The notes under the pieces were generated by a model. That model did not search any database. It was not told the origin of the DNA and saw nothing but the letters and a program-made list of their open reading frames with translations. Source: Malacoraja senta (lineage: Eukaryota). Taken from it: DNA of 64,000 bases. The translations under genes were made by a program, and so were the position numbers. The DNA lies in assembly GCA_038087875.1 (NCBI GenBank), contig JAXLNO010005446.1, positions 1-64,000 on the forward strand, written 5' to 3'. Positions 20,275 through 47,860 of the stretch are shown one piece after another (the stretch's first letter is position 1; each line of letters begins with the position of its first letter).

Positions 20275-20280
20275 TTTATT
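20275..20280 (-). promoter_or_regulatory. Polyadenylation signal of WA
   Basis: AATAAA on the - strand 17 nt downstream of the WA stop codon. Confidence 0.7.
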
Positions 20281-20297
20281 TACAAGAAAAACAGGTT

Positions 20298-20367
20298 CTA
20301 TTCTGCATTTTCCTGTTTCAGGCCTTCAATTTTCATAATCCTTTGAACAGGGATTTCAGCCACGTTC
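20298..20367 (-). CDS. WA: WA (MHC W-category alpha chain) exon 5, cytoplasmic tail
   Basis: Acceptor gacattttctgcAG|; phase 2 matches exon 4; (R)NVAEIPVQRIMKIEGLKQENAE-TAG. Confidence 0.85.
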
Positions 20368-20499
20368 CTGCAGAAAATGTCAAATTAAAAGAGAAAATCT
20401 GGTTAGTCACGGAGCTAAACCATCGACCCACAGTCCTATCACAAATTTTGGTAGAGTCATGGATTTTGGTAGTCGGAGTAAAGGCGTAGACTAATTTCT

Positions 20500-21300
20500 A
20501 AATAGGGGAGAGAATCCAGAAATCGGATGTGCAAAGGGAATGCTGGTGCAGGATTCCCAAAAAGGTTAATCTGCAAGTTGGGAAAAGGGGAAGTACAACG
20601 GGATCTGGGGGGTCCTTGTACATCAGTCTATGAAAGTAAGCATGCAGGTACAGCAGGCAGTGAAGAAAGCCAATGGCATGTTGGCTTTTATAACAAGAGG
20701 AATCGAATATGGGAGCAAAGAGGTCCTTCTGCAGTTGTACAGGGCCCTGGTGAGACCACACCTGGAGTATTGTGTGCAGTTTTGGTCCCCTAATTTGAGG
20801 AAGAACATTCTTGCTATTGAGGGAGCGCAGCGTAGGTTCACCAGGTTAATTCCCGGGATGGCGGGACTGTCACATGCTGAGAGAATGGAGCGGCTGGGCT
20901 TGTACACTCTGGAGTTTAGAAGGATGAGAGGGTATCTCATTGAAACATATAAGATTGTTAAGGGCTTGGACACGCTAGAGGCAGGAAACATGTTCCCGAT
21001 GTTGGGGGAGTCCAGAACCAGGGGCCACACACAGTTTAAGAATAAGGAGTAAGCCATTTAGAACGGAGACGAGGAAACACTTTTCCACCCAGAGAGTGGT
21101 GAGTCTGTGGAATTCTCTGCCTCAGAGGGCGGTGGAGGCCGGTTCTCTGGATGCTTTCAAGAGAGAGCTAGATAGGGTTCTTAAAGAGAGCGGAGTCAGG
21201 GGATATGGGGAGAAGGCAGGAGAATGGGGTTGGGAGGGAGAGATAGATCAGCCGTGATTGAATGGTGGAGTAGACTTGATGGGCCGAATGGCCTAATTCT
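20500..21300 (+). mobile_element. CR1/HER1-like LINE in WA intron 4
   Basis: ORF 20630-21052. Confidence 0.9.
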
Positions 21301-21322
21301 GCTTATGGCCTTATGACCTTAC

Positions 21323-21434
21323 CTTTTGTGAATCTCTCTGCCCAAGTACAAGGTTACCAGTAGCCCAAGAACTCCCACAATAACTCCGACCACACAGACC
21401 GTGATCCCCGAGATGGGAGTTGGAGTCGACCGAT
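21323..21434 (-). CDS. WA: WA exon 4, connecting peptide and transmembrane helix
   Basis: Acceptor tttattctgcAG|; DRSTPTPISGITVCVVGVIVGVLGLLVTLYLGREIHK with the class II alpha C-x2-G-x3-G-x2-G pattern; donor AG|GTAAGG; 112 nt. Confidence 0.92.
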
Positions 21435-21669
21435 CTGCAGAATAAATCAAGGCGGCAAGTTAATTCCTTATTACTTGCGGTCTACATACCATTCGTCACA
21501 TGCAGTGCCATCCCTCAGGCCCAGCCCACTACGCCTTAGAGTCCTATCACAAATTTTGGTGGAGTTGTGGATTTTGGCAGTCGGGGTAAAGGCATAGACT
21601 ATTTTCTAAATGGGGAGAGAATCCAGAAATCGGATGTGCAAAGGGAATGCTGGTGCAGGATTAGGCCAT

Positions 21670-22290
21670 TCGTTTCCTCGTCTCCGTTCTAAATGGCCGA
21701 CCCCTTATTCTTAAACTGTGTGTGGCCCCTGGTTCTGGACTCCCCCAACGTCGGGAACATGTTTCCTGCCTCTAGCGTGTCCAAACCCTTAATAATCTTA
21801 AAAAGGATTTCGGCCCGAAACGTTGCCTATTTCCTTCGCTCCATAGATGTTGCTGCACCCGCTGAATTTCTCCAGCATTTTTTGTGTACCTTAATAATCT
21901 TATATGTTTCAATAGGATGCCCTCTCATCCTTCTAAACTCCAGAGTGTACAAGCCCAGCCGCTCCATTCTTTCAACATATGACAGACCCGCCATCCCGGG
22001 AATTAACCTGGTGAACCTACGCTGGGCTCCCTCAATAGCAAGAATGTCCTTCCTCAAATTAGGGGACCAAAACTGCACACAATACTCCAGGTGTGGTCTC
22101 ACTAGGGCCCTGTACAACTGCAGAAGGACCTCTTTGCTCCTATATTCGACTCCTCTTGTTATAAAGGCCAACATGCCATTGGCTTTCTTCACTGCCTGCT
22201 GTACCTGCATGCTTACTTTCATAGACTGATGTACAAGGACCCCCAGATCCCGTTGTACTTCCCCTTTTCCCAACTTGGCGCCATTTAGAT
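21670..22290 (-). mobile_element. CR1/HER1-like LINE with an inserted Penelope-derived mini element
   Basis: ORF 21827-22378(-); the insert at about 21800-21890 is flanked by duplicated cttaataatctta. Confidence 0.85.
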
Positions 22291-22534
22291 AGTAAATTGT
22301 GTCTGTCTTTTGTGTCTGCGGTATAACCAGCATCTGCAGTTTGTTTGTACAGACTTGATCGGATGTTGTTGGCTTCACCTTGTACTAAACGTTGCTCCCT
22401 TGTCATGTATCTCTGCACTGTAAACGGCTCGATTGTAATCGTGTATAGTCTTTCCGCCGGCTGGTTAGCACGCAACAAAAAGCTTTTCGCTGTACCTCGG
22501 TACACGTGACCACAAACCAAACCCAACCACTTAC

Positions 22535-22816
22535 CAAGCGAGAGGGTCAGGGCTTCATCGAGGCTGACGTGAGCCACGAGGCAGCTGAAGGTGTCCCCGC
22601 GTTGGGGCTCGACCCGGATGTACTTCAGGATGTTGAAGGTCCAGTCTGTCTCGACCAGCAGTGCGGACGAGTGGACGGGGCCGGCGAAAGGTTGGCCGTT
22701 GACCAGGAACTGGAGCTCAATCTCGAAAGGGTAGAACCTCTCGGCAAAACAGTACAGGTTGATGGGTCTCTGTAGGGCGTGGTCCTCTTCCGTGTAGATG
22801 TGGACGATGGGTTTCT
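22535..22816 (-). CDS. WA: WA exon 3, Ig-C1 alpha2 domain (beta2-microglobulin-like)
   Basis: Acceptor cttgttgcAG|; KPIVHIYTEEDHALQRPINLYCFAERFYPFEIELQFLVNG...ALLVETDWTFNILKY...GDTFSCLVAHVSLDEALTLSL; donor G|GTAAGT; 282 nt, phase 1-1. Confidence 0.93.
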
Positions 22817-22849
22817 CTGCAACAAGAGGTAAGACTTTAACACCGTGAA

Positions 22850-22990
22850 TATGGTGGAGATATTACACCTCGAGGAAATGAGACTCGTCCTAGCAGGAAA
22901 ACAAGAACAATTCCTAAAAATATGGTCACCTTTTAATGATTGGTTACAAGTATAATATGGTGCAGCATAATCCTAGAAAGTTATTGTTTT
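22850..22990 (+). mobile_element. L1-clade LINE extreme 3' fragment
   Basis: EILHLEEMRLVLAGKQEQFLKIWSPF; related copies at about 24430-24490 and 49380-49640(-). Confidence 0.55.
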
Positions 22991-23254
22991 ACAACCAGGT
23001 GATGGGTGTGAATTAGGCTTCGAATTCCCTTTCTTTTTTGTTTAGCTCTACCTTTGGATTTTTTACTTATTTCCTTTCCCTTCTCAAGGCCCTCTTCTCT
23101 TTTTTTGTGATATAACTTTTTATTAGAAGCAAACATATTACAATGTAGAGTAACATATTATAATAGAAGAAAAAACTTTTCATATACATCAATCATCCAT
23201 ACATTATTAAATTTGTCAATTGTCAGTTAATGCTGCTCAGTTAAAATTGTCAAA

Positions 23255-24160
23255 TATGCAGACGACACGACAATAATTGGCCTCATCTCAGACAACAATG
23301 AATCACAATACCATCAAACAGTGGACAGCGCAGTCAAATGGTGTGCAGAAAACAACCTCCAGCTTAACACCTCAAAAACCTTAGAAACCATCATAGATTT
23401 CAGACGCAAACAAAACCTCAAACCCCCGGTCCATGTCAACTCCCATCCCATAACCTCCATGAACTTATTTAAGTTTCTGGGCACCTATATCTGCAACAAT
23501 CTAAAATGGCACATCAATGCTGACCACATCATTAAGAAAGGACAACAACGCCTATACTTCCTCAGACAGCTCAAGTAGTTCAGAGTCCACAAACACCTCC
23601 TGGTCCGCTTCTATCAATCCATCATTGAAAGCATCATCACCTCCTCAATCACAGTCTGGTACGGAAACACTGACAGTCACTCACTACACAGAATACAGCG
23701 CATTGTCTCCAAGGGCCTCTAGGATCATCAACTCTCCCCCTCCCCTCAATCCATTCCATTTACCTCCAACGTACCTCAAAACGGGCAACAAAGAATCATC
23801 TCGGACCCCCTCCCATCCAGCAAACCACCTTTTCCAGTCTCTCCCTTCAGGGAGGCGCCTTAGGTCACTTGCTACAAAATCCACCCGTTTTAAAAACAGT
23901 TTCTTCCCCTCAGCAATAAGAACACTTAATTCCCTCCAATAACATTTTGACTTTGATGTATACAGTGTCTTGTCTATGGGTTTTTGTCTGTTCTTTTGCA
24001 CTATGTATTGTTGGTGAGATTTGTGATTTGTGATGTGTTTTATTATTATTGTTATTAGTGTCAATGTGCTAAAGCCGTGTACCATCATGTACCGAACCCA
24101 ATTACCACCAACCCTGGTCGTGCGTGTGGCAAATAACGTTTCTATTCTATTCTATTCTTC
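23255..24160 (+). mobile_element. Rex1/Babar-like LINE 3' portion
   Basis: YADDTTIIGLISDN...KTLETIIDFRRK...KGQQRLYFLRQL...PSGRRLRSL...RFKNSFFP, with a (TTCTA)n tail. Confidence 0.88.
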
Positions 24161-25079
24161 TAGTGTTTTTTTTTAATATAGATAGAAAAAGAAAAATAGA
24201 GAGAAAGAAGAGAGAAGAAAGAAGAATTTCAATATCAAAAAAGAAAAAAAGGTGGAATGAATAACTTATAATACGTCATAGGAGATAAGTTCGTAGGTTA
24301 TGAAATATAATTACATCTAATGCTGAGTTCAAGCTTCAGTCGGGCTTTCACGCTGGGCCCACTCTATCCCTTCAAATAGGCAATGAATGGAGCCCATATT
24401 TTAACAAAAAGTTCTTGCTTGTCCATTAAGAAATGTCGGAGACCCTACATCTAGAAAGAATTAGACTCGTCTTAATGGACAAGGCCCTCTTGTCTTTGGG
24501 GCCTGTTTTCTTTTTTCTTTTTTCTTTTTCTTTTTTTTCACATTCTCAAGCACGCAGTCTACTTAACCATCATCGTTCATTTAACGCCAACTACTGCGGT
24601 CTACACTTCACTACTATCCTCATTCTTCTCTTCTTTCTCTTTTCTCTTTTTCTATTACAGGTTAAAGTTTTTTAAAAAAGAGAAGTTGTATGTACACGAA
24701 ACGTATTATGTTGCATATCATGATTAAGATGTATGTACAATGCTTCTAATTTAAAAAAAAAAAAAATACACTGTGAAGCCCGCGGTCTCCGGTAAGAAGA
24801 GGCCGACTCGGGAGCTCCAGTGTTCCGATCCGTCCCGACGCCGGAGTTTCCATCATCCCGACGAGAGGGTTTGGACAGCGGATCTCGTTCACAGGCACGG
24901 AAGTCGCTATCAAAACATGGGGTGGGACACAATTTCTCGGCGGCCGCGCATGCGCACACACACACGCCCACTCACGCGCGTGCGCACACACGTGAGGCTT
25001 CGGCCGTGGGCCCTGTGGACGGTAACATTGGGAGCTGACCTGGTTGGTGACTGACTCCGAACTCCAGCAACAGCAGCTT

Positions 25080-25450
25080 ATGGACAATAGACAATAGGTG
25101 CAGGGGTAGAGGCCATTCGGCCCTTCGAGCCAGCACCGCCATTCAATGTGATCATGGCTGATCATCCCCAATCAGTACCCCGTTCCTGCCTTCTCCCCAT
25201 ATCCCCTGACTCCGCTATCTTTAACAGCCCTATCTAGCTCTCTCTTGAAAGCATCCAGAGAACCGGCCTCCACCGCCCTCTGAGGCAGAGAATTCCACAG
25301 GCTCACCACTCTCTGTGAGAAAAAGTGTTTCCTCGTCTCCGTTCTAAATGGCCGACCCCTCATTCTTAAACTGTGTGTGTGGCCCCTGGTTCTGGACTCC
25401 CCAACATCGGGAACATGTTTCCTGCCTCTAGCGTGTCCAAACCATTAACA
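25080..25450 (-). mobile_element. CR1 3' fragment inserted into the GC-rich repeat
   Basis: ORF 25172-25363(-); AGCTT duplicated at 25075-25079 and 25451-25455. Confidence 0.85.
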
Positions 25451-25894
25451 AGCTTCGTCCGCCCCGAATCGTGGGGCTTGAATGGGCCCGTTCGCGGGGG
25501 GGGGCTTTCATCGGCCGGCGGGGGCTTCAACATCGGGAGCCTCGATCGCCTCGATGCAGCGGTTTGATTTTAAGCCGCGCCGGGCGATGAAAGGCCCCGC
25601 GAACTGGGCCGATTCAGCCCTTAGAAAGCGGCTGATAAAATCCGGATTACAAAACATGGGGGGGATTGTCCCCCACCTCTCAAAGCAGGGAGGGGAAGAG
25701 TCCCCCCCCGTCCCCCCCAGGATATCCGCCCCTGGGACTGCTCAAAAGACCCGACCACCAGGGGTGAACAAAGGAGGAGGATGACTGGACTTTATTGCCT
25801 GCCGTCAGTGAGGAATGAATGTGGTGGATGTTTCTGTTAAATTTCTTGTGTATTAAGATGTTTTTACTAGTATGGTAAGTCAAATATCACTGTA

Positions 25895-26325
25895 GAAATA
25901 AAATGCTGGAGAAACTCAGCGGATGAGGCAGCACTATGGAGCGAAGGAATAGGTGACGTTTCGGGTCGAGACATCCTCTATTGTCAGAGTGAGGCCCAGC
26001 GCAAATTGGAGGGGCAGCACCTCATATTTCACTTGGGTAGTTTACACCCCAGCGGTACGAACATTGACTTCTCCAATTTCAGGTAGTCCCTGCTTTCTCC
26101 CTCCTTCCCCTCCCCTTGCCAGCTCTCCCACAGCCCACTGTCTCCGCCTCATCCTTTCTTCTTCCTGCCCCCCCCCCCACCCTCCCCACATCAGTCTGAA
26201 GAAGGGTCTCGACCCGAAACGTCACCTATTCCTTCGCTTCATAGATGCTGCCTCACCCGCTGAGTTTCTCCAGCATTTTTGTCTATCTTCGATTTTTCCA
26301 GCATCTGCAGTTCTTCCTTAAACAA
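25895..26325 (+). mobile_element. Penelope-like element 3' end with inverted terminal module
   Basis: GQHLIFHLGSLHPSGTNIDFSNFR, then CTGAAGAAGGGTCTCGACCCGAAACGTC. Confidence 0.82.
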
Positions 26326-26409
26326 ATATCACTGTATTGGACAATAATGCTATCCTACACACTAGGGACAATTTTACAACTATACCAGGCCAATTAACCT
26401 CTGAGCCTG

Positions 26410-27200
26410 TACGTGCAGCGTAGGTTCACGAGGTTAATTCCCGGGATGGCGGGATTGTCATATGTTGAGAGAATGGAGCGGCTGTGCTTGTATACTCTGG
26501 CGTTTAGAAGGACGACAGGGAATCTTATTGAAACTTATAAGATTATTAAAGGTTTGGACACGCTAAAGGCAGGAAACATGTTCCCGATGTTGGGGGAGCC
26601 CAGAACCAGGGGCCACACACAGTTTAAGAATAAGGGGTCGGCCTTATTCAGGCTTCAGGTAGTCCTTACTTTCTCCCCTTCTTAGCTCTCCCTCAGACCA
26701 CTGGCTCCACCTCTTCCTTTCTCCTTATTCTTAAAGTGTGGCCCCTGGTTCTGGACTCCCCCAACATCGGGAACATGTTTCCTGCCTCTAGCGTGTCCAA
26801 GCCCTTAACAATCTTACATGTTTCAATGAGATATCCTCTCATCCTTCTAAACTCCAGAGTATACAAGCCCAGCCGCTCCATTCTCTCAGCATATGACAGT
26901 CCCGCCATCCCGAGAATTAACCTTGTAAACCTACGCTGGGCTCCCTCAATAGCAAGAATGTCCTTCCTCAAATTTGGGGACCAAAACTGCACACAATACT
27001 CCAGGTGTGGTCTCACTAGGGCCCTGTACAACTGCAGAAGGACCACTTTGCTCCTATATTCGATTCCTCTCGTTATGAAGGCCAACAGGCCATTGGCTTT
27101 CTTCACTGCCTGCTGCACCTGCATGCTTACTTTCATAGACTGATGTACAAGGACCCCCAGATCCCGTTGTACTTCCCCTTTTCCCATCTTGACGCCATTT
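26410..27200. mobile_element. Two CR1 fragments in opposite orientation
   Basis: ORFs 26413-26685(+) and 26693-27187(-). Confidence 0.88.
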
Positions 27201-27328
27201 AGATAGATGCTGCCTCACCCGCCGAGTTTCTCCAGCACGTTTTGTCTACATTCCTTTGGTTTATTTATGATTCATTCGCAAGAAGAGGAAGAAGTAGCAT
27301 CCTCCGCTTTCCTCGCACGCCGACTTAC

Positions 27329-27604
27329 TGCTGGCGATGGGTTGGTTGTTGTTGCCGGCCGTCAGTTCGCTCATGTCACCCCGGGTCTGGGTCTGAAACC
27401 CCTCGGCCCTCTGCGCGAAAGAGGTCACCTCCGCCTCGCCCAGCTCCTCCCTCCCGTCGGTGGCCATGCCGTTGACGTAGAAGGCGCGCGCCTCGTGGTC
27501 GTAGGCGAGGAAGGGCACGGAGTTCACGCTGAGGATGTCCAGAGTCTTCTCCGAGCCCGACGAGCCCCGGCCGTAGACGAAATGCTCGGACAACGTCTCG
27601 ATCT
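27329..27604 (-). CDS. WA: WA exon 2, membrane-distal alpha1 domain
   Basis: Acceptor tctctcgccccaccAG|; IETLSEHFVYGRGSSGSEKTLDILSVNSVPFLAYDHEARAFYVNG...NNNQPIAS; donor A|GTAAGT; 276 nt, phase 1-1; LSVNSVPFLAYD resembles class I alpha1 YVDDTQFVRFD. Confidence 0.9.
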
Positions 27605-27719
27605 CTGGTGGGGCGAGAGAACGACGGAGAAGAGAATCAAGTCAAGCAAGTCAAAAGTGCTGGAGAAACTCAGCGGGTGAGGCAGCATCTATGGAGCAAA
27701 GGAAATTTTGGTCCCTTCA

Positions 27720-28450
27720 TTTGAGGAAGGACATTCTTGCTATTGAGGGAGCCCAGCGTAGGTTTTACAAGGTTAATTCCCGGGATGGCGGGACTGTCAT
27801 ATGCTGAGAGAATGGAGCGGCTGGGCTTGTGCACTCTGGAGTTTAGAAGGATGAGAGGGTATCTCATTGAATCATATAAGATTATTCAGGGTTTGGACAA
27901 GCTAGAGGCAGGAAACATGTTCCTGATGTTGGGGGAGTCCAGAACCAGGGGCCACACACACAGTTGAAGAATAAGGGGTAGGCCATTTATAACGGAGACG
28001 AGGAAACACTTTTTCTCACAGAGAGTGGTGAGTCTGTGGAATTCTCTGCCTCAGAGGGCGGTGGAGGCCGGTTCTCTGGATGCTTTCGAGAGAGAGCTAG
28101 ATAGGGCTCTTAAAGTTAGTGGAGGCAGGGGATATGGGGAGAAGGCAGGAGCAGGGTACCGATTGGCCATCAGCATGTTCCCGATGTTGGGGGAGTCCAG
28201 AACCAGGGGCCACACACAGTTTAGGAGTAAGGGGAGGTCGGCCATTTTGAACGGAGACGAGGAGAAACATTTCCATCCAGAGAGTTGTGAATCTGTGGCC
28301 ATTTAGGACTGAGATGAGGAGAAACTTTTCCACCCAGAGAATTGTAAATCTGTGGAATTCTCTGCCTCAGAGGGCGGTGGATGATCAGCCATGATCGCAT
28401 TGAACGGCGGTGCTGGCTCGAAGGGCCGAATGGCCTGCTCCTGCACCTTT
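27720..28450 (+). mobile_element. CR1 fragments in WA intron 1
   Basis: ORFs 27737-27967 and 28025-28306. Confidence 0.85.
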
Positions 28451-28613
28451 TGTCTATTGTCTATACCATTAACCCGCTGAGACAAAAGTATGTCTGAAGA
28501 AGGGTCCCGACCCGAAACGTCACCCATTCCTTCTCTCCAGAGGTGCTGCCTATCCCCGCTGAGTTACTCCAGCATTTTTTTGCGCCTGCCTTTGGAATAA
28601 ACTTCCTACTCAC

Positions 28614-28674
28614 CAATCGTTACCACGGCTGCAGCCAGAGACAGCAGGACCATTAGCAAGCCTCCGAGACCCAT
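28614..28674 (-). CDS. WA: WA exon 1, signal peptide
   Basis: MGLGGLLMVLLSLAAAVVTI; A at -3; donor G|GTGAGT; 61 nt, phase 1. Confidence 0.88.
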
Positions 28675-28789
28675 GTTCCAGAACAATCTATCTCCCCGGA
28701 GACTTGTACAGAGGAGATCCTGTTAACGAAGTGCAGGCACAACCCACTAACCCCCAGAGAAATTGAGCCGATTTATGTTCCATGCATTT

Positions 28790-28892
28790 CACAACCAATG
28801 TTAATTACTAGGGTGAGTGCCAAACCTAAATTGGCTCAGGTTCAAAATGATCAGCCACTGCCTTCGGGAAGTTCCCCAGAATGTACGTCACT
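28790..28892. promoter_or_regulatory. WA proximal promoter motifs
   Basis: CCAAT 28795-28799; ATTGG 28830-28834; kappaB-like GGGAAGTTCC 28866-28875; CRE-like TACGTCA 28884-28890. Confidence 0.5.
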
Positions 28893-29036
28893 TTTTTTTA
28901 TGAAGAGGGCATTGTGGTCTTTTGAAAACCATTGCCTATTGTCATTTGCACTCCCTCATGTCTCCATTCCTTCACTCCAACTGCTTGTCACGGGCTGTTT
29001 GCATTCACCTCAGTGAGCGACTGGCTTTGTCACGGG

Positions 29037-29234
29037 CAGGGCCGGATTTAGATGAAGAGAGGCCCTAGGCTATTCCACTTGTGAGGCCCCTCCCAGTCCG
29101 CTATGCAAGGCCCCTCCCAATCAGCCTATGAAGCCTATAGGTAAATCTGGCCCTGCCGAGGCCCCCCTAGATCTCGAGGCCCTAAGCTTAAGGCCTTACG
29201 TAAATTCTGAAGCTTATACGTAAATCCTGCCCTG
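29037..29234. mobile_element. hAT-type MITE, 198 bp
   Basis: TIRs CAGGGCCGGATTTA / TAAATCCTGCCCTG; exact 8-bp target duplication GTCACGGG at 29029-29036 and 29235-29242. Confidence 0.88.
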
Positions 29235-29279
29235 GTCACGGGCATATTGTGAGAAAAAAATGCTTCTCCGTGTTGCTTT

Positions 29280-30240
29280 GGGTTTGGACACGCTAGAGGC
29301 AGGAAGCATGTTCCCGATGTTGGGGGAGTCCAGAACCGGGGGGCCACACACAGTTTAGGAATAAGGGGGGTCGGCCATTTTGAACGGAGACGAGGAAATA
29401 CTTTTTTCACCTGGAGAGTTGTGAATCTGTGGCCATTTAGGACTGAGATGAGGAGAAACTTTCCCACCCAGAGAGTTGCGAGTCTGTGGAATTCTGTTCC
29501 ACATTCCACATCTGTTCCAGATGTTGGGGGAGCCCAGAACCAGGGGCCACAGTTTAAGAATAAGGGGTAAGCCATTTAGAACGGAGACGATGAAACACTT
29601 TTTCTCACAGAGAGTGGTGAGTCTGTGGCCGTTTAGGACTGAGACGAGAAGAAACTTTTCCACCCAGAGAGTTGTGAGTCTGTGGAATTCTCTGCCTCAG
29701 AGGGCGGTGGAGGCCGGTTCCCTGGATGCTTTCAAGTGTAAAGAATCTATAACGAGGCATCGTTACTTTACTATCTTTATTCATACTGGAGCATTACATT
29801 TTGCACTAGCTGTACGTGGTCTGTCACAGGAACTAGAGAGTGATCTGTGGGTGGGGAGGTTGTAGTTATACTTGTGATATGGGGAGTGGTTAGTAGGTAT
29901 GAGGTCACTATGTTAAAGGCACATGCATATATCATCTACATCAAGGGAGAGCTAGATAGGGCTCTTAAAGATAGCGGAGTCAGGAGATATGGGGAGAAGG
30001 CAGGAACGGGGTACTAATTGGGGATGATCAGCCATGAGATGAGGAAGAACTTCTTCACCCAGAGGGTGGTTAATTTATGGAATTCACTGCCCCAGGGAGC
30101 AGTGGAAGCAGAAAATTAAATATATTTAAGTCTAAAATAGATGTTTTTTTAGCTGCCAAGGGGATAAGGGGCTACGGGGAGAGGGCAGGGATATGGACCT
30201 AGGTATGGTTAGTATAGTAAGACCTGAGTGATCTCCTGGA
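29280..30240 (+). mobile_element. Scrambled CR1 3' fragments in the WA-WB intergenic region
   Basis: Repeated GNMFPMLGE / TETRKHFFSQRVV segments. Confidence 0.8.
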
Positions 30241-30689
30241 CAAGTGTCGATCGCCTGGATTGGGGTCGGAGAGGAATTTCCCGGATTTTTTTCCCGAATT
30301 GGACCTGGGTTTTTATCCGGTTTTTTGCCTCCCCCAGGAGATCACGCGGTTCTTGGGGTGGAGAGGGGTGATAGCGATATAAAGGGGAGGGTAGTGTCTT
30401 GTGTTCTGTGTCTTGTGTCTACTGTTTGTGGGTAAGGGTGTCTGTTTAGTGTTCAGCCATGAGCGAATGGCGGTGCGGGCTCGATGGGCCTGGTGGTCTA
30501 CTCTCGCACCTACTTTCTATGTTTCTATGTTTCTATGATCGCATCGAATGGCGGTGCTGGCTCGAAGGGCCGAATGGCCTCTACTCCTGCACCTATTGTC
30601 TATTGTCTATTTAATATCACAGTGAAATTATTTTCTTATGTGCTGTAAAGTATTGCCAAATTGAAGCACAATCCCCGATTAGCAACAAG

Positions 30690-30930
30690 AGCTGGCTGCC
30701 AAAGTCCCCGGTTCAATCCTGGCCACTGCTGTCTGTACGCAGTTTGTACGTTCTCCCCGTGACCACGTGGCTTTTTCTCCGGGTGCCCCCGGTTTCCTCC
30801 CACACCCCAAATGACGCACCGGTTTGCAGGCTAATTGGTGTTGTGAAATTTGTAAATTGCCCACCTGGCGTGCGTGGGATAGTGTCAGCGGGCTGGTCGG
30901 CAAGGACCCGGTTGGAAGAAAGTCCTGTTT
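30690..30930 (+). mobile_element. Degenerate V-SINE
   Basis: CCCGGTTCAATCC box B and V-domain. Confidence 0.7.
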
Positions 30931-31105
30931 CTGCGCTCCCGCCCCACCCACAGGGAGGGGCACAACTTTTCCGTCACAGATCAATTGCCAAACGACCGGG
31001 TGTCTGTTTCCAGTGGGTGGAGTCGGATAGGTTGCTTGTGTTTGAACCTCCCGTCTCAGTTCGTTCACTCTCCCAGTCGATTCAGGCTGATCGAGAATCC
31101 TGAAG

Positions 31106-31178
31106 ATGAGAGTGACTTTGGTGGCCATTTTTCATGCGTTTGTTTCAGTCGTGGGTGGGCTAGCCAGCGACCAAAGTG
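31106..31178 (+). CDS. WB: WB-2 (MHC W-category beta chain) exon 1, signal peptide
   Basis: MRVTLVAIFHAFVSVVGGLASDQS; A at -3; donor G|GTAAGT; 73 nt, phase 1. Confidence 0.85.
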
Positions 31179-35386: not shown

Positions 35387-35656
35387 GCCTGCATGTGATG
35401 CACCAGTTATGTGGCTGCAGCCAGCGCGGTCGGCAAATGGTCGTGTCTTGGGTGGACGGCTACGACGGAGAAACCGTCCTGTACTACCAGCTGGGCAACA
35501 AGTCGTTCGTCGCCACCCGGCCTCACGCCCAGTCGCTGGTGAACGGCCGCAACGCCAACCTCCAGTTCGTGGAGGCCGTCCCCATACTGGTGTCCAACCT
35601 CTGCGACAAAATCAAACGCCTCGCTGCCCTCGTCAACGTCACCCAGGAAAGGAGAG
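35387..35656 (+). CDS. WB: WB-2 exon 2, membrane-distal beta1 domain (class I alpha2-like)
   Basis: Acceptor gtttcctccgcAG|; GLHVMHQLCGCSQRG...DGYDGETVLYY...VSNLCDKIKRLAALVNVTQERR, with a C101/C164-equivalent pair; donor G|GTCAGT; 270 nt. Confidence 0.92.
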
Positions 35657-36729: not shown

Positions 36730-36999
36730 CTCCCACCTACACCAGGGCTTACACCCAGAGGAGGCTGGCACAAGACTACCTGGTGTGCCAGGCGAGCGGG
36801 TTCTTCCCCCGCCACGTCAACGTGAGCTGGGTCAGAGACGGAGAGGTGGTGGAGAGGGGGCAGGAGACGGTCGACGTGGTCCCTCAAAGCGACGGGACCT
36901 TCCAAGTCAGGAGCGTGCGCCCGCTAAACGGCGACGGCGGGACGTACGTCTGTCAAGTGGAACATGAAGCCGTCAAGGGGAAGCTGTTCATACCTCTGG
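36730..36999 (+). CDS. WB: WB-2 exon 3, Ig-C1 beta2 domain (class I alpha3-like)
   Basis: Acceptor tttgtgcAG|; APTYTRAYTQRRLAQDYLVCQASGFFPRHVNVSWVRDG...VVPQSDGTFQVRS...YVCQVEHEAVKGKLFIPL; donor G|GTAAGG; 270 nt. Confidence 0.93.
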
Positions 37000-38259: not shown

Positions 38260-38373
38260 AACGCAACCTGGCAGTGTCGAATGAAGCTTTGATCATCATC
38301 GGGAGTGTGATGGGAATATTGGGAATCTCGGCAGCGGTGGTGGCCACAGTGATTCATTGCTGGCTCTTGCATG
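38260..38373 (+). CDS. WB: WB-2 exon 4, connecting peptide and transmembrane helix
   Basis: Acceptor gtcttctctgcAG|; ERNLAVSNEALIIIGSVMGILGISAAVVATVIHCWLLH; donor G|GTAAGT; 114 nt. Confidence 0.92.
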
Positions 38374-39268: not shown

Positions 39269-39298
39269 GTGGAAAGAAGTCAGGTGTTACTCCAACAG
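39269..39298 (+). CDS. WB: WB-2 exon 5, 30-nt cytoplasmic mini-exon
   Basis: Acceptor ctctatttctatgtacAG|; GGKKSGVTPT; donor CAG|GTGAGC; phase 1-1. Confidence 0.7.
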
Positions 39299-39369
39299 GT
39301 GAGCCAAACGTCTCAATAGCTTTTGTACAATATAGATGTAAGCATTATATACCTCCCCCTCTTCCATCA

Positions 39370-41580
39370 GAAACATAGAAACATAGAAAATAGGTGCAGG
39401 AGGATGCCATTCGGCCCTTCAAGCCAGCACCTTTCATGAAAATAGGTGCAGGAGGAGGCCATTCGGCCCTTCAAGCCAGCACCGCCATTCATTGTGATCA
39501 TGGCTGATCGTCCCCTATCAATAACCCGTGCCTGCCTTCTCCCCATATCCCTTGATTCCACCAGCCCCCGAGAGCTCTATCTAACTCTCTCTAAAATCCA
39601 TCCAGTGATTTGGCCTCCACTGCCCTCTGCCCTAATTCCACAAATTAGACAATAGACAATAGGTGCAGGAGTAGAGGCCATTTGGCCCTTCGACCAGCAC
39701 CGCCATTCAATGTGATCATGGTTGATCATCCCCAATCAGTACCCCGTTCCTGCCTTCTCCCCATATCCCCTGACTCCGCTATTTTTAAGAGCCCTATCTA
39801 TCTCTCTCTTGAAAGCATCCAGAGAACCTGCCTCCACCGCCCTCTGAGGCAGAGAATTCCACAGACTCACCACTCTCTGTGAGAAAAAGTGTTTCCTCGT
39901 CTCCGTTCTAAATGGCTTACCCCTTATTCTTAAACTGTGGCCCCTGGTTCTCGACTCCCCCAACATCGGGAACATGTTTCCTGCCTCTAGCGTGTCCAAG
40001 CCCTTAACAATTCACAACTCTCTGGGTGAAAAAGTTTTTTTCTCACCTCAGTCTTAAATGGCCTCCCGTTTATTCTAAGACCGTGTGGCCCCTGGTTCTG
40101 GACTCGCCCAACATTGGGAACATTTTTCCTGCATCTAGCTTGTCCAGTCCTTTTATAATTTTATATGTTTCTATAAGATCCCCCCCCCCCTCCCCCTCAT
40201 CCTTCTAAACTCCAGTGAATACAAGCCTAGTCTTTTCAATCTTTCCTCATATGACAGTCCCGCCATCCCAGGGATTAATGTCGTGAACCTACGCTGCACT
40301 GCCTCAATCACAAGGATGTCCTTCCTCAAATTAAGAGACCAAAACTGTACACAATACTCCAGATGTGGTCTCACCAGAGCCCTATACAACTGCAGAAGAA
40401 CCTCTTTACTCCTATACTGAAATCCTCTTGTTATGAAGGCAAACATTCCATTAGCTTTTTTCACTGCCTGCTGTACCTGCACGCCAACTTTCAGTGACTG
40501 GTGTACAAGGACACCCAGGTCTCGCTGTACCCCCCCCCCCCCCTTACCTAACCTAACCCCAATGAGATAATAATCTGCCCCCTTGTTTTTGCCACCAAAG
40601 TGGATAACCTCACATTTATCTATATTATACTGCATCTGCCACGCATCTGCCCACTCACTCAACCTGTCCAGGTCACCCTGCAACCTCCTAACATCCTCCT
40701 CAAGGCTGCAAGGTGACTTGGATAGGTTGGGTGAGTGGGCAAATGTTTGGCAGATGCAGTATAATGTGGATAAATGTGAGGTTATCCACTTTGGTGCAAG
40801 AACAGGAAAGTAGACTATTATCTGAATGGTGGCCGATTAGGAAAAGGGGAGATGCAATGAGACCTGGGTGTCATGGTACACCAGTCATTGAAAGTAGGCA
40901 TGCAGGTGCAGCAGGCAGTGAAGAAAGCGAATGGTATGTTAGCATTCATAGCAAAAGGATTTGAGTATAGAAGCAGGGAGGTTCTACTGCAGTTGTACAG
41001 GGTCTTGGTGAGACCACACCTGGAGTATTGCGTACAGTTTTGGTCTCCTAATCTGAGGAAAGACATTCTTGCCATAGAGGGAGTACAGAGAAGGTTCACC
41101 AGACTGATTCCTGGGATGACAGGACTTTCATATGAAGAAAGACTGGATAGACTCGGCTTGTACTCGATAGAATTTAGAAGATTGAGGGGGGATCTTATAG
41201 AAACTTACAAAATTCTTAAGGGGTTGGACAGGCTAGATGCAGGAAGATTGTTCCCGATGTTGGGGAAGTCCAGAACAAGGGGTCACAGTTTAACGATAAG
41301 GGGGAAGTCTTTTAGGACCGAGATGAGAATTTGTTTTTCCACACAGAGAGTGGTGAATCTGTGGAATTCTCTGCCACAGAAGGTAGTTGAGGCCAGTTCA
41401 TTGGCTATATTTAAGAGGGAGTTAGATGTGGCCCTTGTGGCTAAAGGGATCAGGGGGTATGGAGAGAAGGCAGGTACGGGATACTGAGTTGGATGATCAG
41501 CCATGATCATATCGAATGGCGGTGCAGGCTTGAAGGGCCGAATGGCCTTCTCCTGCACCTATTGTCTATGTTTCTATGAC
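39370..41580. mobile_element. Cluster of CR1/HER1-like LINEs, tail-to-tail
   Basis: ORFs 39736-39999(-), 40171-40683(-), 40873-41487(+). Confidence 0.9.
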
Positions 41581-41626
41581 AGTAATAAATTAAATGCAAT
41601 ACAATGTGACTCTGCTCTTTCCACAG

Positions 41627-41725
41627 TGGGCTTCAACAAGGAGACAGGGTTATGCCGAACCTACACTTGTGGTGGGAGTGTTCACTCCAACACATCCAAC
41701 AGCTCAAATTCCAGCGGAGATTCAG
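41627..41725 (+). CDS. WB: WB-2 exon 6, cytoplasmic
   Basis: Acceptor ctctgctctttccacAG|; VGFNKETGLCRTYTCGGSVHSNTSNSSNSSGDS; donor CAG|GTAATA; 99 nt, phase 1-1; unique sequence among repeats. Confidence 0.72.
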
Positions 41726-41782
41726 GTAATACGAGACACAGGAATAGAATTAGGTCCGAATATAGACACAAAAAGCTGGAGT

Positions 41783-42768
41783 AAGGGGCCTGTCCCACTT
41801 GCATGCGATTGCGTGCGTTTGGCGCGACCAACGGAGGTCGCGCACAGTTCGCGCTAAAGTTCGCGCATGACGTCATTTAAGTCATGCTTACAAATCAGCT
41901 GGGCAGGAGGCGGGCCGACTGAATTTGGGCGTCGGGTAGTGACGTCATCGCGCAACGCCACGCCGGGCGGTGATGTCATCGCGCAACACCACGCGTTAGG
42001 CGTACATAGATACACAGATACATAGACAATAGGTGCAGGAGTAGGCCATTCGGCCCTTCGAGCCTGCACCGCCATTCAATATGATCATGGCTGATCATCC
42101 AACTCAATATCCCGTACCTGCCTTCTCTCCATACCCCCTGATCCCTTTAGCCACAAGGGCCACATCTAACTCCCTCTTAAATATAGCCAATGAACTGGCC
42201 TCAACTACCTTCTGTGGCAGAGAGTTCCAGAGATTCACCACTCTCTGTGTGAAAAAGTTTTCCTCATCTCGGTTTTAAAGGATTTCCCCTTTATCCTTAA
42301 GCTGTGACCCCTTGTCCTGGACTTCCCCAACATCGGGAACAATCTTCCTGCATCTAGCCTGTCCAACCCCATAAGAATTTTGTACGTTTCTATAAGATCC
42401 CCCCTCAATCTTCTAAATTCTAGCGAGTACAAGCCAAGTCTATCCAGTCTTTCTTCATATGAAAGTCCTGACATCCCAGGAATCAGTCTGGTGAACTTCT
42501 CTGTACTCCCTCAAGACGCTGCGCACGACCGCAATGCGCCTGCGTGCGTACGCGGGCCGGCAGGCCGTTGGCGAGCGAAGATTCCGGCCACCGCAGGAAT
42601 TTCAGAGCCCCGCGCGATGTCGCGACCAGCCCCCGCACAACTCCATACCCCTCCGCGCCTCTAAGTGGGACCGGCCCCGCGCGGCCACACGGTGCCCGTA
42701 CGCCCCAAGCGACCACCAGGTGGCGTAATTTGCGAGCCGGGGTAGCGTAAGTGGGACAGGACCTTTAG
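41783..42768. mobile_element. MITE (AAGGGCCTGTCCCAC TIRs) split by a CR1 insertion (about 42010-42505, -)
   Basis: Left TIR aaggggcctgtcccacttg at about 41783; right TIR taagtgggacaggacctt at about 42748-42768. Confidence 0.7.
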
Positions 42769-43829
42769 GTTCGAATATCGACACAAAAAGCTGGAGTAAC
42801 TCAGCGGGACAGGACTGCAGCATCTCTGGAGAAAATGGTATAGGTGACTGTTTCGGGTCGAGACCCTTCTTCAGACCCGAAACGTCGCCTATTTCCTTCG
42901 CTCCATAGATTAGATTAGATTAGATTATATTTCTTGTCATTTGAACCTCAAAGAGGCTCAAACGAAACTCCGTTTCCACAGCCATACAAACAAAACAATT
43001 CCTACACGACACATAAACAATTCAATTTACAGAAAAACATCCATCACAGTGAATCTCCTCCTCACTGTGATGGAAGGCAAAGTCTTTTTCTCTCCCTGCA
43101 CCATTTTTCTCCCGATGTTGAAGCCCCAGGCGGGTAATGTTAAGTCCCACGGCCGTTGAGGCCGCGCCGGGCGGTGTACGGCCTCGCTCCGGGCCCAAAA
43201 GTCACAAAGTTGGAGCCCCCGTCGGGCGCTGGAATGTCCCGCGGCCATTAAAGCCGCGCAGGGCGGTGTACGGCCCCGCTCCGGGTCGTTCCATCCCCGC
43301 GACATGGGCGGGAGAAGTTGCGTTGTGGGAGCTCCGGAAAGCGGTCTCTCACCCGGACCCGCGAGCTCCCGATATCATAGTCCACGGGTCTGCAGCTGCA
43401 GCTGGAGCTCCGGATTCGGGCCGCAGCAGCGAGCCACCACCGCTCCCCCACGCTCCGAGGGCGGCCAGCCCCACCCACGATGGTAAGTCCGCAGCTCCAC
43501 AGGCTCCGCGACTGGAGCCCCCAAGTCGTCCCGGTCGGAGGCCGCTCGCTCCACGGAGCTAGGCCCCAACGACAACGGAGACCCGACAGGGAAAAGGTCG
43601 GGTCTCCCGTGCAGAGAAGCGTTTTTTTTTAAGTTTCCCCCTCCCCGCGCCCCCCACATATACACAGTTAAAAACAGTATAAAAAAAACACAAACAACTA
43701 CATTTAACTAAACAAAAATTTTTAAAAAAGACAGACAGGCTGTAGGGGCCGCTGCAGTAATCCGCGACGCAGCACTTGATGCTGCCTCATCCGCTGAGTT
43801 TCCCCAGCATTTTTGTCTGGAGCGGCCGG

Positions 43830-45240
43830 GCTTCCTCTGAGGCACAGAATTCCACAGACTCACCACTCTCTGTGAGAAAAAGTGTTTCCTCGTCTCCGTT
43901 CTAAATGGCCGTCCCCTTATTCTTAAACTGTGTGTGTGTGGCCCCTGGTTCTGGACTCCCCCAACATCGGGAACATGTTTCCTGCCTCTAGCGTGTCCAA
44001 ACCCTTTACAATCTTATATGTTTCAATAAGATGCCCTCTCATCCTTCCAAACTCCAGAGTGTACAAGCCCAGCCGCTCCATTCCCTCAGCCGATGACAGT
44101 CCCGCCATCCCGGGAATTAACCTTGTAAACCTACGCTGCACTCCCTCAATAGCAAGAATGTCCTTCCTCAAATTAGGGGAGCAAAACTGCACACAATACT
44201 CCAGGTGTGGTCTCACAAGGGCCCTGTACAACTGCAGAAGGACCTCTTTGCTCCTGTACTCAACTCCTCTTGTTATGAAGGCCAACAGGCCAAAACTGCA
44301 CACAGTACTCCAGGTGTGGTCTCACCAGGGCCCTGTACAACTGCAGAAGGACCTCTTTGCTCCTGTACTCAACTCCTCTTGTTATGAAGGCCAACAGGCC
44401 ATTTGCTTTCTTCACTGCCTTGCACTAAACATTATTCCCTTATCATGTATCTATACACTGTAAAATGGCTCGATTGTAATCATGTATTGTCTTTCCGCTG
44501 ACTGGTTAGCACGCAACAAAAGCTTTTCACTGTACCTCGCTACACGTGACAATAAACTAAACTAAACTGAACTTGCACTTTATGGTTTTTTTGCAGCTGA
44601 TGGGTTGACTAAATCTTCGGCATAAGGTACGTTCGGTCAGTTTTATTCTTGCTATTGAGGGAGCCCAGCGTAGGTTCACCAGGTTAATTCCTGGGATGGC
44701 GGGACTGTCATATGCTGAGAGAATGGAGCGGCTGGGCTTGTACACTCTGGAATTTAGAAGGATGAGAGGGAATTCTTATTGAAACATATAAGATTATTAA
44801 GGGTTTAGACTAGGCTTGTATTCACTGGAGTTTAGAAGGATGGGGGGGGGGGGATCTTATAGAAACATATAAAATTATAAAAGGACTGGACAAGCTTGGT
44901 GCAGGAAAAATTTCCCCAATGTTGGGCGAGTCCAGAACCAGGGGCCACACACAGTCTTAGAATAAAGGGAGGTCATTTAAGACTGAGGTGAGAACAAACT
45001 TTTCACCCAGAGAGTTGTGAATTTGTGGAATTCCCTGCCACAGAGGGCAGTGGAGGCCAAGTCACTGGATGGATTTAAGAGAGAGTTAGATAGAGCTCTA
45101 GGGGCTAGTGGAATCAAGGGATATGGAGAGAAGGCAGGCACGGGTTATTGATTGGGGGACGATCAGCCATGATCACAATGAATGGCGGTGCTGGCTCAAA
45201 GGGCCGAATGGCCTCCTTCTGCACCTATTTTCTATGTTTC
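43830..45240. mobile_element. CR1 fragments
   Basis: ORFs 43923-44303(-) and 44557-44745 region(+); includes the 109-nt duplication junction at about 44275-44305. Confidence 0.85.
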
Positions 45241-45480
45241 TTTCAATTTCAGGATAGTGTTAGTGATAGCGGGGATCGCTGGTCGGCCCGGACTCGGTGG
45301 GCCGAAGGCCCTGTTTCCGCTCTGTATCTCTAAAGCCTAAATCGGGTCTGAACCGAGCTGAAAACTCGAAAACATTTCACGATATGTTCATTCGATAAGA
45401 TGCGCGATCGGTTTGGACTTTAGACTTTTCAACTGCAGCGATTTAAGAGCAATCCAAAGCATTTGACTCTCTCTTCACAG

Positions 45481-45557
45481 ACCACACAGTTGGACTCAGG
45501 ACCCTCTCTCTGCTCCCCTTCTACATCGACGAGACCAATCGTGGACTGGGCGAATAA
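45481..45557 (+). CDS. WB: WB-2 candidate terminal coding exon 7
   Basis: Acceptor tttgactctctcttcacAG|; phase-1 entry gives DHTVGLRTLSLLPFYIDETNRGLGE-TAA; unique sequence; AATAAA at 46396-46401 in a downstream AT-rich unique stretch. Confidence 0.6.
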
Positions 45558-45569
45558 TTGACGAATGAC

Positions 45570-47860
45570 AATAGGTGCAGGAGTGGAGGCCATTCGGCCC
45601 TTCCAGCCAGCACCGCCATTCAATGTGATCACGGCTGATCATCCCCAATCAGTACCCCGTTCCTGCCTTCTCCCATATCCCCTGACTCCGCTATCTTTAA
45701 GAGCCCTATCTAGCTCTCTCTTGAAAGCATCCAGAGAACCGGCCTCCACCGCCCTCTGAGGCAGAGAATCCCACAGATTCACAACTCTCTGGGTAGAAAA
45801 AGTGTTTCCTCGTCTCCGTTCTAAATGGCCGACCCCTTATTCTTAAACTGTGTGTGTGTGGCCCCTGGTTCTGGACCCCCAACATCGGGGAACATATTTC
45901 CTGCCTCTATGGTGGGACTGTCATATGAGAGAATGGAGCGGCTGGGCTTGTACACTCTGGAGTTTAGAAGGATGAGAGGGTATCTCATTGAAACATATAA
46001 GGTTGTTAAGGGTTTGGACACGCTAGAGGCAGGAAAACATGCTCACATTGAATGGCGGTGCTGGCTCGAAGGGCCGATTGGCCTTCTCCTGCACCTATTG
46101 TCTATAGCGGTCAGGGGATATGGGGAGAAGGCAGGAAAGGGGTACTGATTGGGGATAATCAGCCATGATCACATTGAATGGCGGTGCTGGCTCGAAGGGC
46201 CGAATGGCCTGCACCTATTATCTATTGCCTATTTCCACGGAACTCTTGTTACTTACTGCTCTAGTTACCTTTGTTTTCCCTCATTGTGACTTGTTTCGTG
46301 AGATTTCCACTGCCGTGAATATCATTCACACACATTTTGCGCTGTATAATTTCGTTACATTCCAGGAAAATCTAAGAGATTATTATTATCACAACAATAA
46401 AATAATATTATCTAATATATATTTTGTCTGTGGTCATCTTTTAAATGGTGAATTCCCTGTAAATGCGATTGCCGGAAGGGCTCCAGTAAATGGTGGCTTT
46501 AGAGGAGGGCACCCTAAATGGGTGGCCAGGGGAGGCCGCAGCCTGCATAGCAGTTGTACAGGGCCTTGGTGAGACCACACCTGGAGTATGTGTCCAGTTT
46601 TGGTCCCCTAATCTGAGGAAAGACATTCTTGCCATAGAGGAAGTACAGAGAAGGTTCACCAGACTGATTCCTGGGATGACAGGACTTTCATATGAAGAAA
46701 GACTGGATAGACTCGGCTTGTACTCGCTAGAATTTAGAAGATTGAGGGGGGATCTTATAGAAACTTACAAAATTCTTAAGGGGTTAAACAGGCTAGATGC
46801 AGGAAGATGGTTCCCGATGTTGGGGAAGTCCAGAACAAGGGGTCACAGCTTAAGGATAAGGGGGAAGTTTTAGGACCGAGATGAGAAAAACATTTTTCAC
46901 ACAGAGAGTGGTGAATCTGTGGAACTCTCTGCCACAGAAAGTAGTTGAGGCCAGTTCGTTGGCTATATTTAAGAGGGAGTTAGATGTAGCCCTTGTGGCT
47001 AAAGGGATCAGGGGGTATGGAGAGAAGGCAGGTACAGGATACTGAGTTGGATGATCAGCCATGATCATATTGAATGGCGGTGCAGGCTCGAAGGGCCGAA
47101 TGGCCTCTACTCCTGCACCTATGTCTATGTTTCTATGTTTCTGTACGTGGTTAGGAAGTAACAATAGACAATAGGTGCAGGAGTAGAGGCCATTCGGCCC
47201 TTTGAGCCAGCACCGCCATTCAATGTGATCATCCCCAATCAGTACCCCGTTCCTGCCTTCTCCCCATATCCCCTGACTCCGCTATCTTTAAGAGCCCTAC
47301 TAGCTCTCTCTTGAAAGCATCCAGAGAACCGGCCTCCACCGCCCTCTGAGGTAGAGAATTCCACAGCCTCACAACTCTCTGGGTGAAAAAGTGTTTCCTC
47401 ATCCCGTTCTACATGGCCGACTCCTTATTCTCAAGGTGGACAAAATGCTGGAGAAACTCAGCGGCATCTATGGAGCGAAAGAAATAGTCAAAGTTTGGGC
47501 AGAAACCCTTATTCTTCAACTGCGGCCCCTGGTATGGACTCCCCCCCCCAACATCGGGAACATGTTTCCTGCCTCTAGCGTGTCCAAACCCTTACAATCT
47601 TATATGTTTCAATAAGGCATCCTCTCATCCTTCTAAACTCCAGAGTGTACAAGCCCAGCCGCTCCATTCTCTCAGCATATGACAGTCCCGCCATCCCGGG
47701 AATTAACCTGGTGAACCTACGCCTGGGCTCCCTCAATAGCAAGAATGTCCTTCCTCAAATTTGGAGACCAAAACTGCACACAATACTCCAGGTGTGGTCT
47801 CACCAGGGCCCTGTACAACTGCAGAAGGACCTCTTTGCTCCTGTACTCGACTCCTCTTGA
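45570..47860. mobile_element. CR1 fragments flanking a short unique AT-rich stretch (46230-46500)
   Basis: ORFs 45821-46021(-), 46490-46873(+), 47645-47860 region. Confidence 0.82.

Follow-up and report, generated by a model that had tools for sequence, protein, structure and literature searches.

The two genes and their exons

Two divergently transcribed genes of the major histocompatibility complex (MHC) type lie in a 64,000-nucleotide stretch of DNA of the skate Malacoraja senta (assembly GCA_038087875.1, contig JAXLNO010005446.1, positions 1 to 64,000, forward strand), which was analysed at its full length and is referred to as the window throughout. Very probably they are the skate orthologues of one published W-category pair (Okamura 2021, PMC8713811): WA_DS5-like is the alpha chain of 266 amino acids (aa), encoded on the minus strand, and WB_Nds5L is the beta chain of 294 aa, encoded on the plus strand. 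Both genes are real and intact and no product of chance. An earlier sequence-only reading, from which we keep the short names WA and WB-2, had placed them in the W category; orthology, diagnostic residues and the absence of an extra exon bear out this assignment and narrow it to the WA_DS5-like/WB_Nds5L lineages. The pair thus adds a new species to a lineage pair already published in sharks and, in part, in little skate, and is not a discovery. The surrounding DNA is repeat-rich vertebrate sequence, in which open reading frames derived from long and short interspersed elements (LINE, SINE) dominate the six-frame list, and the exons were joined by hand after a scan for the immunoglobulin (Ig) C1 signature, the C1 exons matching at 22569-22751 (minus strand) and 36786-36965 (plus strand).

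WA consists of five exons (801 nt, 266 aa), as had been proposed, with all introns of the GT-AG type and all junctions in phase. Exon 1 (28614..28674, minus strand, 61 nt) carries the ATG at 28674 and the signal peptide, ends in phase 1 at a GT donor and joins exon 2 in phase; its region forms an 85% identical block in the thorny skate, Amblyraja radiata. The membrane-distal alpha1 domain is encoded by exon 2 (27329..27604, minus strand, 276 nt, AG/GT sites), which is 84% identical to the little skate WA DS5-like protein, and the alpha2 domain by exon 3 (22535..22816, minus strand, 282 nt; Pfam C1-set, E 6.6e-16). Exon 4 (21323..21434, minus strand, 112 nt) contributes the connecting peptide, the transmembrane helix (CVVGVIVGVLG) and the start of the tail, and exon 5 (20298..20367, minus strand, 70 nt) the cytoplasmic tail with its TAG stop, the tail RNVAEIPV...KIEGLK being common to the little skate (Leucoraja erinacea) protein P0001. 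A polyadenylation signal AATAAA follows at 20280-20275, and this is the start coordinate which the sequence-only reading had given to the whole interval. The transmembrane pattern C220-x2-G-x3-G-x2-G noted in that reading is present; class II alpha chains and WA chains are known to carry the string CxxGxxxGxxG (PMC13399432). In the longer string CxxGxxxGxxGxxxG the fourth and last Gly is replaced by Thr in all three skate sequences with a transmembrane exon (window, P0001, P0002).

For WB-2, seven exons and the course of the first four had been correctly recognised, whereas the proposed length of 933 nt (310 aa) and the end at 46401 did not hold: the gene has 885 nt, encodes 294 aa and ends at 44625. 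Exons 1 to 4 are evident from the window itself, and the 3' exons were located via the A. radiata orthologue P0005. Exon 1 (31106..31178, plus strand, 73 nt) holds the ATG and the signal peptide (A. radiata counterpart at L001:10001-10073). The membrane-distal beta1 domain follows in exon 2 (35387..35656, plus strand, 270 nt), with GLHV, CGC, YDG, NKS and a second Cys in the helix, and is 90-91% identical to A. radiata; exon 3 (36730..36999, plus strand, 270 nt; Pfam C1-set, E 2.8e-16) encodes the beta2 domain, in which the Ig Trp is kept, and exon 4 (38260..38373, plus strand, 114 nt) the connecting peptide and a transmembrane helix with a single GxxxG (GSVMGILG). The cytoplasmic part is spread over a mini-exon 5 (39269..39298, plus strand, 30 nt, GGKKSGVTPT, AG/GT), 97% identical to its counterpart L001:18280-18309, exon 6 (41627..41725, plus strand, 99 nt), which includes the tail residues C262 and C267 and most of a Ser run at three-residue spacing, and exon 7 (44597..44625, plus strand; counterpart L001:21955-21983) with the last nine codons (ADGLTKSSA) and the TAA stop at 44623-44625. 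Position 46401 was rejected as the 3' end, since all that ends there is an AATAAA lying 1.8 kb beyond the stop codon, and no exon at this place matches any orthologue; a nearer AATAAA is found at 44961. Three sequons (N62, N108, N145) lie in the extracellular part of WB-2.

The spliced models show a class II-type architecture in both chains, namely a leader, one distal domain, one C1-set domain, and connecting peptide, transmembrane and cytoplasmic parts. That each chain has one distal domain, one C1 domain (recognised by Pfam as C1-set) and one transmembrane helix agrees with what had been read from the letters. Both products are type I membrane proteins with a signal peptide, an MHC-fold distal domain, a C1-set Ig domain, a glycine-zipper transmembrane helix and a cytoplasmic tail.

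Orthology, diagnostic residues and domain folds

Orthology ties both chains to the published W-category sequences. WA is 84% identical over 266 residues to P0001 of the little skate, and P0001 corresponds in turn, over the stretches shown, to two rows of the published datasets, 'little skate DS5 like' and 'little skate WA DS5 like 01' (PMC8713811); the A. radiata gene adjoining WB also yields 266 aa. More distantly, two banded houndshark proteins labelled 'MHC class II alpha chain like protein' (P0004 and P0023) show identities to WA of 49-50% at full length and 66% in alpha2. WB-2 and the A. radiata RefSeq protein P0005 are 88% identical over all 294 residues without a gap, and in the A. radiata locus L001, which encodes P0005, each of the seven WB-2 exons is matched without a gap by one equally long and bounded by identical splice dinucleotides. 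Because every exon is matched in this manner, the WB-2 model cannot be attributed to chance. An exhaustive HMMER search with beta1 returned six W-category proteins (P0005-P0008, P0010, P0012) and four others, which were discarded: Pfam recognises nothing in one of them, and the other three carry bacterial-type domains (cadherin-like, FG-GAP, dockerin) and are unrelated. WB-2 groups with P0012, whose sequence agrees over the stretch shown with the row 'cloudy catshark WBNds5L 159K'; furthermore, the beta1 domain of the window (LHVMHQLCGC...SWVDGYDGETVLYY) closely follows the great white shark WB Nds5L row, and the transmembrane segment nearly matches that of the zebra bullhead shark WB Nds5L (PMC8713811). 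A tree of C1 domains places WA within a skate, then a batoid clade, and then among shark WA_DS5-like sequences, and WB-2 is nested likewise in WB_Nds5L, with starred support at the skate and batoid nodes.

Automated annotation had been expected to mislabel these exons, which proved half right; at the National Center for Biotechnology Information (NCBI) the exon models of the sister species are right, but the names of the orthologues are inconsistent, ranging over 'class I alpha chain 11/11-like', 'class II A beta chain-like', 'MR1-like' and 'beta-2-microglobulin-like'.

Residue criteria for the W category were taken from Okamura 2021 (PMC8713811). WA alpha2 has Y8 (KKPIVHIY), F37 (LQFLVNG) at the position of the canonical Ig Trp, L55, which stands six residues ahead of W61, and W61 itself (ETDWTF). 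Across 15 WA_DS5-like sequences W61 is invariant and position 37 is occupied by F, L or I, the other diagnostic residues being conserved. WB beta2 carries the string VVPQSDGTFQ, as had been noted, with Gly where class II beta2 has Trp; among ten sequences P57 is invariant and position 61 is G in eight, R in two and W in none, while W61 is invariable in conventional class II beta2 (PMC8713811). WB beta1 starts with GLHV and carries YDG. Of the class I alpha2-type set Q6, A32, G35 and D37, G35 alone is present.

Pfam points in the same direction: C1-set is the sole domain recognised, and MHC_I, MHC_II_alpha and MHC_II_beta match neither the exons of either chain nor the full-length orthologues, so that the pair is neither conventional class II nor class I. 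In searches of the Protein Data Bank (PDB), WA alpha2 as a single sequence finds beta2-microglobulin-containing chains first (E 8e-19) and class II beta chains next, the matches to beta2-microglobulin falling at E 1e-18 to 1e-19, and the best 60 matches include no class II alpha chain. A family profile of the domain gives the same order, with beta2-microglobulin-heavy chain fusions in the lead. The matches of WB beta2 comprise many Ig heavy chains, with class I alpha3, CD1 and MR1 interspersed; none of the best 60 is a class II beta chain. We rejected 'best PDB match beta2-microglobulin' as a test of class, for the top fusion chains sum two domains and free beta2-microglobulin scores about as class II beta2 does. 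It can safely be stated from these sequence comparisons that WA alpha2 appears clearly to be no conventional class II alpha2, and that it seems about equally close to beta2-microglobulin and to class II beta2.

The distal exons have no match to an MHC family in Pfam, and one sub-threshold match to RelE is judged to be chance. The exons of the window were therefore modelled with AlphaFold2 on family alignments and the models compared by Foldseek. The alpha1 model consists of four strands followed by a long helix, as in half of an MHC platform, with a predicted local distance difference test (pLDDT) score of 74, and every top Foldseek match listed is to a chain of class I, MIC/ULBP, MR1 or class II, albeit a weak one (E about 0.02). 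Searching the PDB with an alpha1 family profile gave nothing relevant, so the evidence for an MHC fold in alpha1 comes from the model and these weak structural matches. A beta1 profile built from ten WB_Nds5L domains has weak matches in the PDB (E 1e-3 to about 1), almost all of MHC fold, among them ULBP6/RAET1L alpha2, chicken class II beta1, chicken class I alpha2 and ZAG, with no clear preference of class. The beta1 model, too, has four strands and then a long helix (pLDDT 87). As predicted by the models, the distal domains of both chains have the fold class of MHC.

Several observations weigh against the W-category assignment and should be set beside it. The 50 best Foldseek matches of the beta1 model are all class II beta chains, HLA-DO beta first (TM-score 0.73-0.77, root-mean-square deviation 2.2-2.7 Å). 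WB beta1 departs from the class I-like consensus, carried by class I and most WB chains, at Q6, A32 and D37, where the window has H, G and T; this is typical of the lineage, as the great white shark WB Nds5L row shows H, G, G and T over the set of four (PMC8713811 dataset), and the lineage is nonetheless counted in the W category. Hence the earlier description of WB-2 as resembling class I alpha2 plus alpha3 applies to its motifs GLHV and YDG, but not to H6, G32 and T37 or to the overall shape of the beta1 model, which is that of class II beta. The affinity of WA alpha2 for beta2-microglobulin is not unique either, since with the family profile free beta2-microglobulin scores 69.5 bits and HLA-DP beta 75 bits. 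F or Y is absent from position 57 of WA alpha2, where V stands in the window and in all 14 aligned WA_DS5-like orthologues; V57 is a trait of the lineage and no defect of the skate gene. The WA protein (266 aa) has no N-x-S/T sequon, although salamander WA is glycosylated (Okamura 2021, PMC8713811). Finally, the splice junctions given here are based on orthologous RefSeq models and on sequence.

Taken at face value, some of these points would suit an ordinary class II A/B pair, classical or DM/DO-like, over-interpreted as W-category, all the more as the architecture, the head-to-head layout and the transmembrane glycine motifs are class II-like, HLA-DO beta heads the structural matches of beta1, and several orthologues are named 'class II ... 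chain-like' by NCBI. We regard this as highly improbable. Neither of the Pfam class II families matches the chains or their full-length orthologues, no class II alpha chain is found among the best 60 PDB matches of WA alpha2, and the C1 domains differ from the conventional ones in diagnostic residues, WA alpha2 lacking the Ig Trp (F37) and having W61, and WB beta2 having G61 where conventional class II beta2 invariably has W. Moreover, both chains are orthologous to sequences assigned to the W category by Okamura 2021, and the published domain trees put the orthologues outside the conventional class II clades (PMC8713811).

The opposite proposal, that WB-2 is a class I heavy-chain gene with a missed alpha1 exon and WA a gene resembling that of beta2-microglobulin, could draw on GLHV and YDG in beta1, on P57 and G61 in beta2, and on the name of the A. 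radiata orthologue ('class I ... alpha chain 11/11-like'). Class I genes also end in short cytoplasmic exons at the 3' side, and the three short cytoplasmic exons of WB-2 resemble them. Nevertheless, this proposal is hardly credible. A missed alpha1 exon, named in the sequence-only reading as a possible flaw of its model, was searched for with six-frame profile scans: the whole window holds one alpha1-type and two beta1-type exons, and none of these lies in the WB-2 introns. In total the scans found three distal-domain exons (WA alpha1, WB-2 beta1 and a beta1 at 6092-6406) and three C1 exons (WA alpha2, WB-2 beta2 and one at 8631-8990). As its introns contain no extra distal-domain exon, WB-2 is no class I gene with three extracellular domains. 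In addition, exon 1 of WB-2 joins beta1 in phase, all six full-length WB_Nds5L orthologues (293-303 aa) have a single distal domain, and WA has a distal domain and a transmembrane segment of its own and hence is no free beta2-microglobulin.

Selection, intergenic region and neighbouring loci

It might be asked whether the two genes, though they look intact, have fallen silent or are decaying members of a duplicated W cluster. The locus is full of LINE and SINE fragments, the intergenic length varies widely among species, and duplicated, divergent pairs occur in catshark (PMC8713811). We consider this improbable, since both frames are complete with canonical splice sites and polyadenylation signals and the exon lengths equal those of the A. 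radiata RefSeq models. The ratio of nonsynonymous to synonymous substitutions (dN/dS) of WB against A. radiata, calculated for the two species by the Nei-Gojobori method, is 0.24 at a dS of 0.24, with 0.20 in beta1, 0.35 in beta2 and 0.10 in the connecting peptide, transmembrane and tail segment. WB is under purifying selection, and exon counterparts, orthologue identity and the low WB dN/dS together show that the genes are intact and constrained. Within the limits of a two-species comparison, the value of 0.20 in beta1 argues against classical diversifying selection.

The divergent start codons at 28674 (minus strand) and 31106 (plus strand), first reported in the sequence-only reading, are confirmed, with 2,431 bp between them. 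WA and WB are divergent neighbours also in A. radiata (7,313 bp from ATG to ATG), in the sawfish Pristis pectinata (3,898 bp) and in the horn shark Heterodontus francisci; for the last species the distance of 4,980 bp was discarded, as the annotated WA start is LINE-derived (MPGVQELSYEERLDR...). In great white shark 1,790 bp separate the ATGs of the published head-to-head WA_DS5-like/WB_Nds5L genes, and in cloudy catshark the distances are 3,059 and 4,185 bp (PMC8713811, supplementary information), so that the intergenic length spans 1.8 to 7.3 kb among species.

Within the intergenic region (28675..31105, 2,431 bp) two blocks are unique, one on the WA side (28675-29304) and one on the WB side (30999-31105), the rest being repeats. 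In a blastn comparison with the A. radiata locus these two blocks alone are single-copy and collinear, the remainder matching dozens of places, and interspersed repeats fill the 1.7 kb between them; close to the start codons, non-coding sequence of the window agrees with that of A. radiata in blocks of 82-85% identity. The region thus looks like two proximal promoters kept close to each other rather than one compact bidirectional promoter. A convincing S-X-Y-type class II promoter module was not found in it. Upstream of the WA ATG (28792-28890, minus strand) a CCAAT box is located at -150 in both skates, and the sawfish has a CCAAT at the corresponding position of the alignment; an inverted ATTGG (-117), a kappaB-like GGGAACTTCC (-192) and a TGACGTA (-207) resembling the cAMP response element are shared at most with A. 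radiata, whose ATTGG counterpart differs in one base. Since the two skates are about 85% identical overall, the sharing of these three strings is uninformative. On the other side, two skates, the sawfish and the horn shark share a 12-nt motif resembling a GT/CACCC box, AGTGGGTGGRGT, which precedes the WB_Nds5L start codon by 82-124 bp; the window has a single copy of it (31011-31024, plus strand), and in the loci of the other species it stands at L001:9896, L002:9865 and L003:9866. Co-regulation of WA and WB is plausible.

The window also contains a third W-category gene on the plus strand, convergent with WA at about 6.1-9.0 kb, to which the beta1-type exon at 6092-6406 (E 4e-8 against the WB_Nds5L beta1 profile) and the C1 exon at 8631-8990 belong; the translation of the latter is close to the row 'little skate WB DS1 like 01' (PMC8713811). 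A WA_DS10-like partner of this gene would lie to the left of the window. Farther to the right there is a run of 200 N at 49822-50021. In Pristis pectinata a gene for 296 aa with a weak MHC_II_beta match and a C1-set domain (L002:31824-36263, minus strand) is situated about 5.5 kb downstream of the sawfish WB_Nds5L; judged by its sequence it may belong to a further WB lineage, or else be a genuine class II beta gene in linkage with the W pair. Two shark RefSeq proteins, P0021 of Cetorhinus maximus (439 aa) and P0025 of Carcharodon carcharias (391 aa), show a WA_DS10-like distal and C1 domain fused to a WA_DS5-like chain. These are probably read-through or merged models, read-through transcripts having been described in spiny dogfish (Okamura 2021, PMC8713811), and the fusions suggest that shark clusters arrange the pairs in an order other than that of the skate window.

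The putative heterodimer and its likeness to known systems

In the tiger salamander, co-expression has shown that WA and WB chains associate and reach the cell surface only together (Okamura 2021, PMC8713811). From this, the class II-like build and the transmembrane motifs we infer a mechanism for the skate pair in which the two chains would pair in the endoplasmic reticulum as a class II-type heterodimer, alpha1 and beta1 jointly forming an eight-stranded sheet topped by two helices. WA alpha2 would place W61 beneath this platform and support it as beta2-microglobulin does, and the GxxxG motifs of both transmembrane helices could pack together. Dimerisation, surface expression and shared regulation of the skate pair are putative, as is any ligand. 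Judged by its sequence features, the pair most likely behaves as a conserved non-classical MHC molecule and not as a polymorphic presenter of peptides.

A further feature is the cytoplasmic tail of WB_Nds5L, which comprises about 55 residues over three mini-exons and belongs to the segment with the lowest dN/dS. Nine sequences from skates, sawfish and sharks, horn shark included, are invariant in C-x4-C, six Ser residues and A-x2-LTK. The six Ser are placed at a strict spacing of three residues (S270 to S285 in the window), with LTK near the C terminus, a spacing which resembles hierarchical phosphorylation sites of the CK1 type. The tail is not discussed in the main text or supplementary information of Okamura 2021, and the words 'cytoplasmic' and 'phosphorylation' do not occur in the supplementary text (PMC8713811). 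As a speculation to which we give rather little credence, the tail may be a phospho-regulated sorting or signalling module and the DS5/Nds5L heterodimer a regulated endosomal or signalling MHC-like receptor; if so, the heterodimer would not be a constitutive surface presenter.

W-category molecules have been proposed as an intermediate between MHC class II and class I, and the skate pair leaves the picture of MHC evolution unchanged. Its value is of another kind. The batoid data in Okamura 2021 were exon fragments of little skate, namely alpha1 and alpha2 on contigs of their own (WA_DS5-like) and an incomplete beta2 of 328 bp (WB_Nds5L) (PMC8713811), to which a complete, linked batoid pair is now added. 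Considered alongside the loci of thorny skate, sawfish and horn shark, it documents that batoids and sharks alike have retained the pair, with its exon plan and orientation. It provides clean batoid constructs for co-expression and ligand work and is useful for annotation, because RefSeq labels such genes class I, class II, MR1-like or beta2-microglobulin-like at random.

Among known systems, the closest is the shark WA_DS5-like/WB_Nds5L pair (PMC8713811), with which the skate genes share lineage, head-to-head pairing, exon and domain plan, the residues Y8, F37, L55 and W61 in WA alpha2 and P57 and G61 in WB beta2, and even the lineage departures V57 in WA alpha2 and H6, G32 and T37 in WB beta1; the distance of 2.4 kb between the skate ATGs falls within the published shark range of 1.8-4.2 kb. 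What distinguishes the present pair is its skate host, the completeness and linkage of both genes, and the Thr which replaces the last Gly of the WA transmembrane string. With conventional class II molecules (HLA-DR, DQ, DO) it has in common one distal and one C1 domain per chain, divergent gene pairing, transmembrane glycine motifs, the conserved Cys of the alpha-chain transmembrane helix and a predicted beta1 fold that superposes at the TM-scores given above, whereas the missing Pfam MHC_II match, an alpha2 without the Ig Trp but with W61, a beta2 without W61, and a beta-chain tail of about 55 residues over three extra exons set it apart. Class I with beta2-microglobulin is likewise similar in part, in W61, L55 and Y8 on the beta2-microglobulin-like domain, P57 and G61 on the alpha3-like domain, and YDG; in contrast to that system, which combines a three-domain heavy chain with a soluble light chain, the skate pair has neither and consists of two membrane-anchored chains with one distal domain each.

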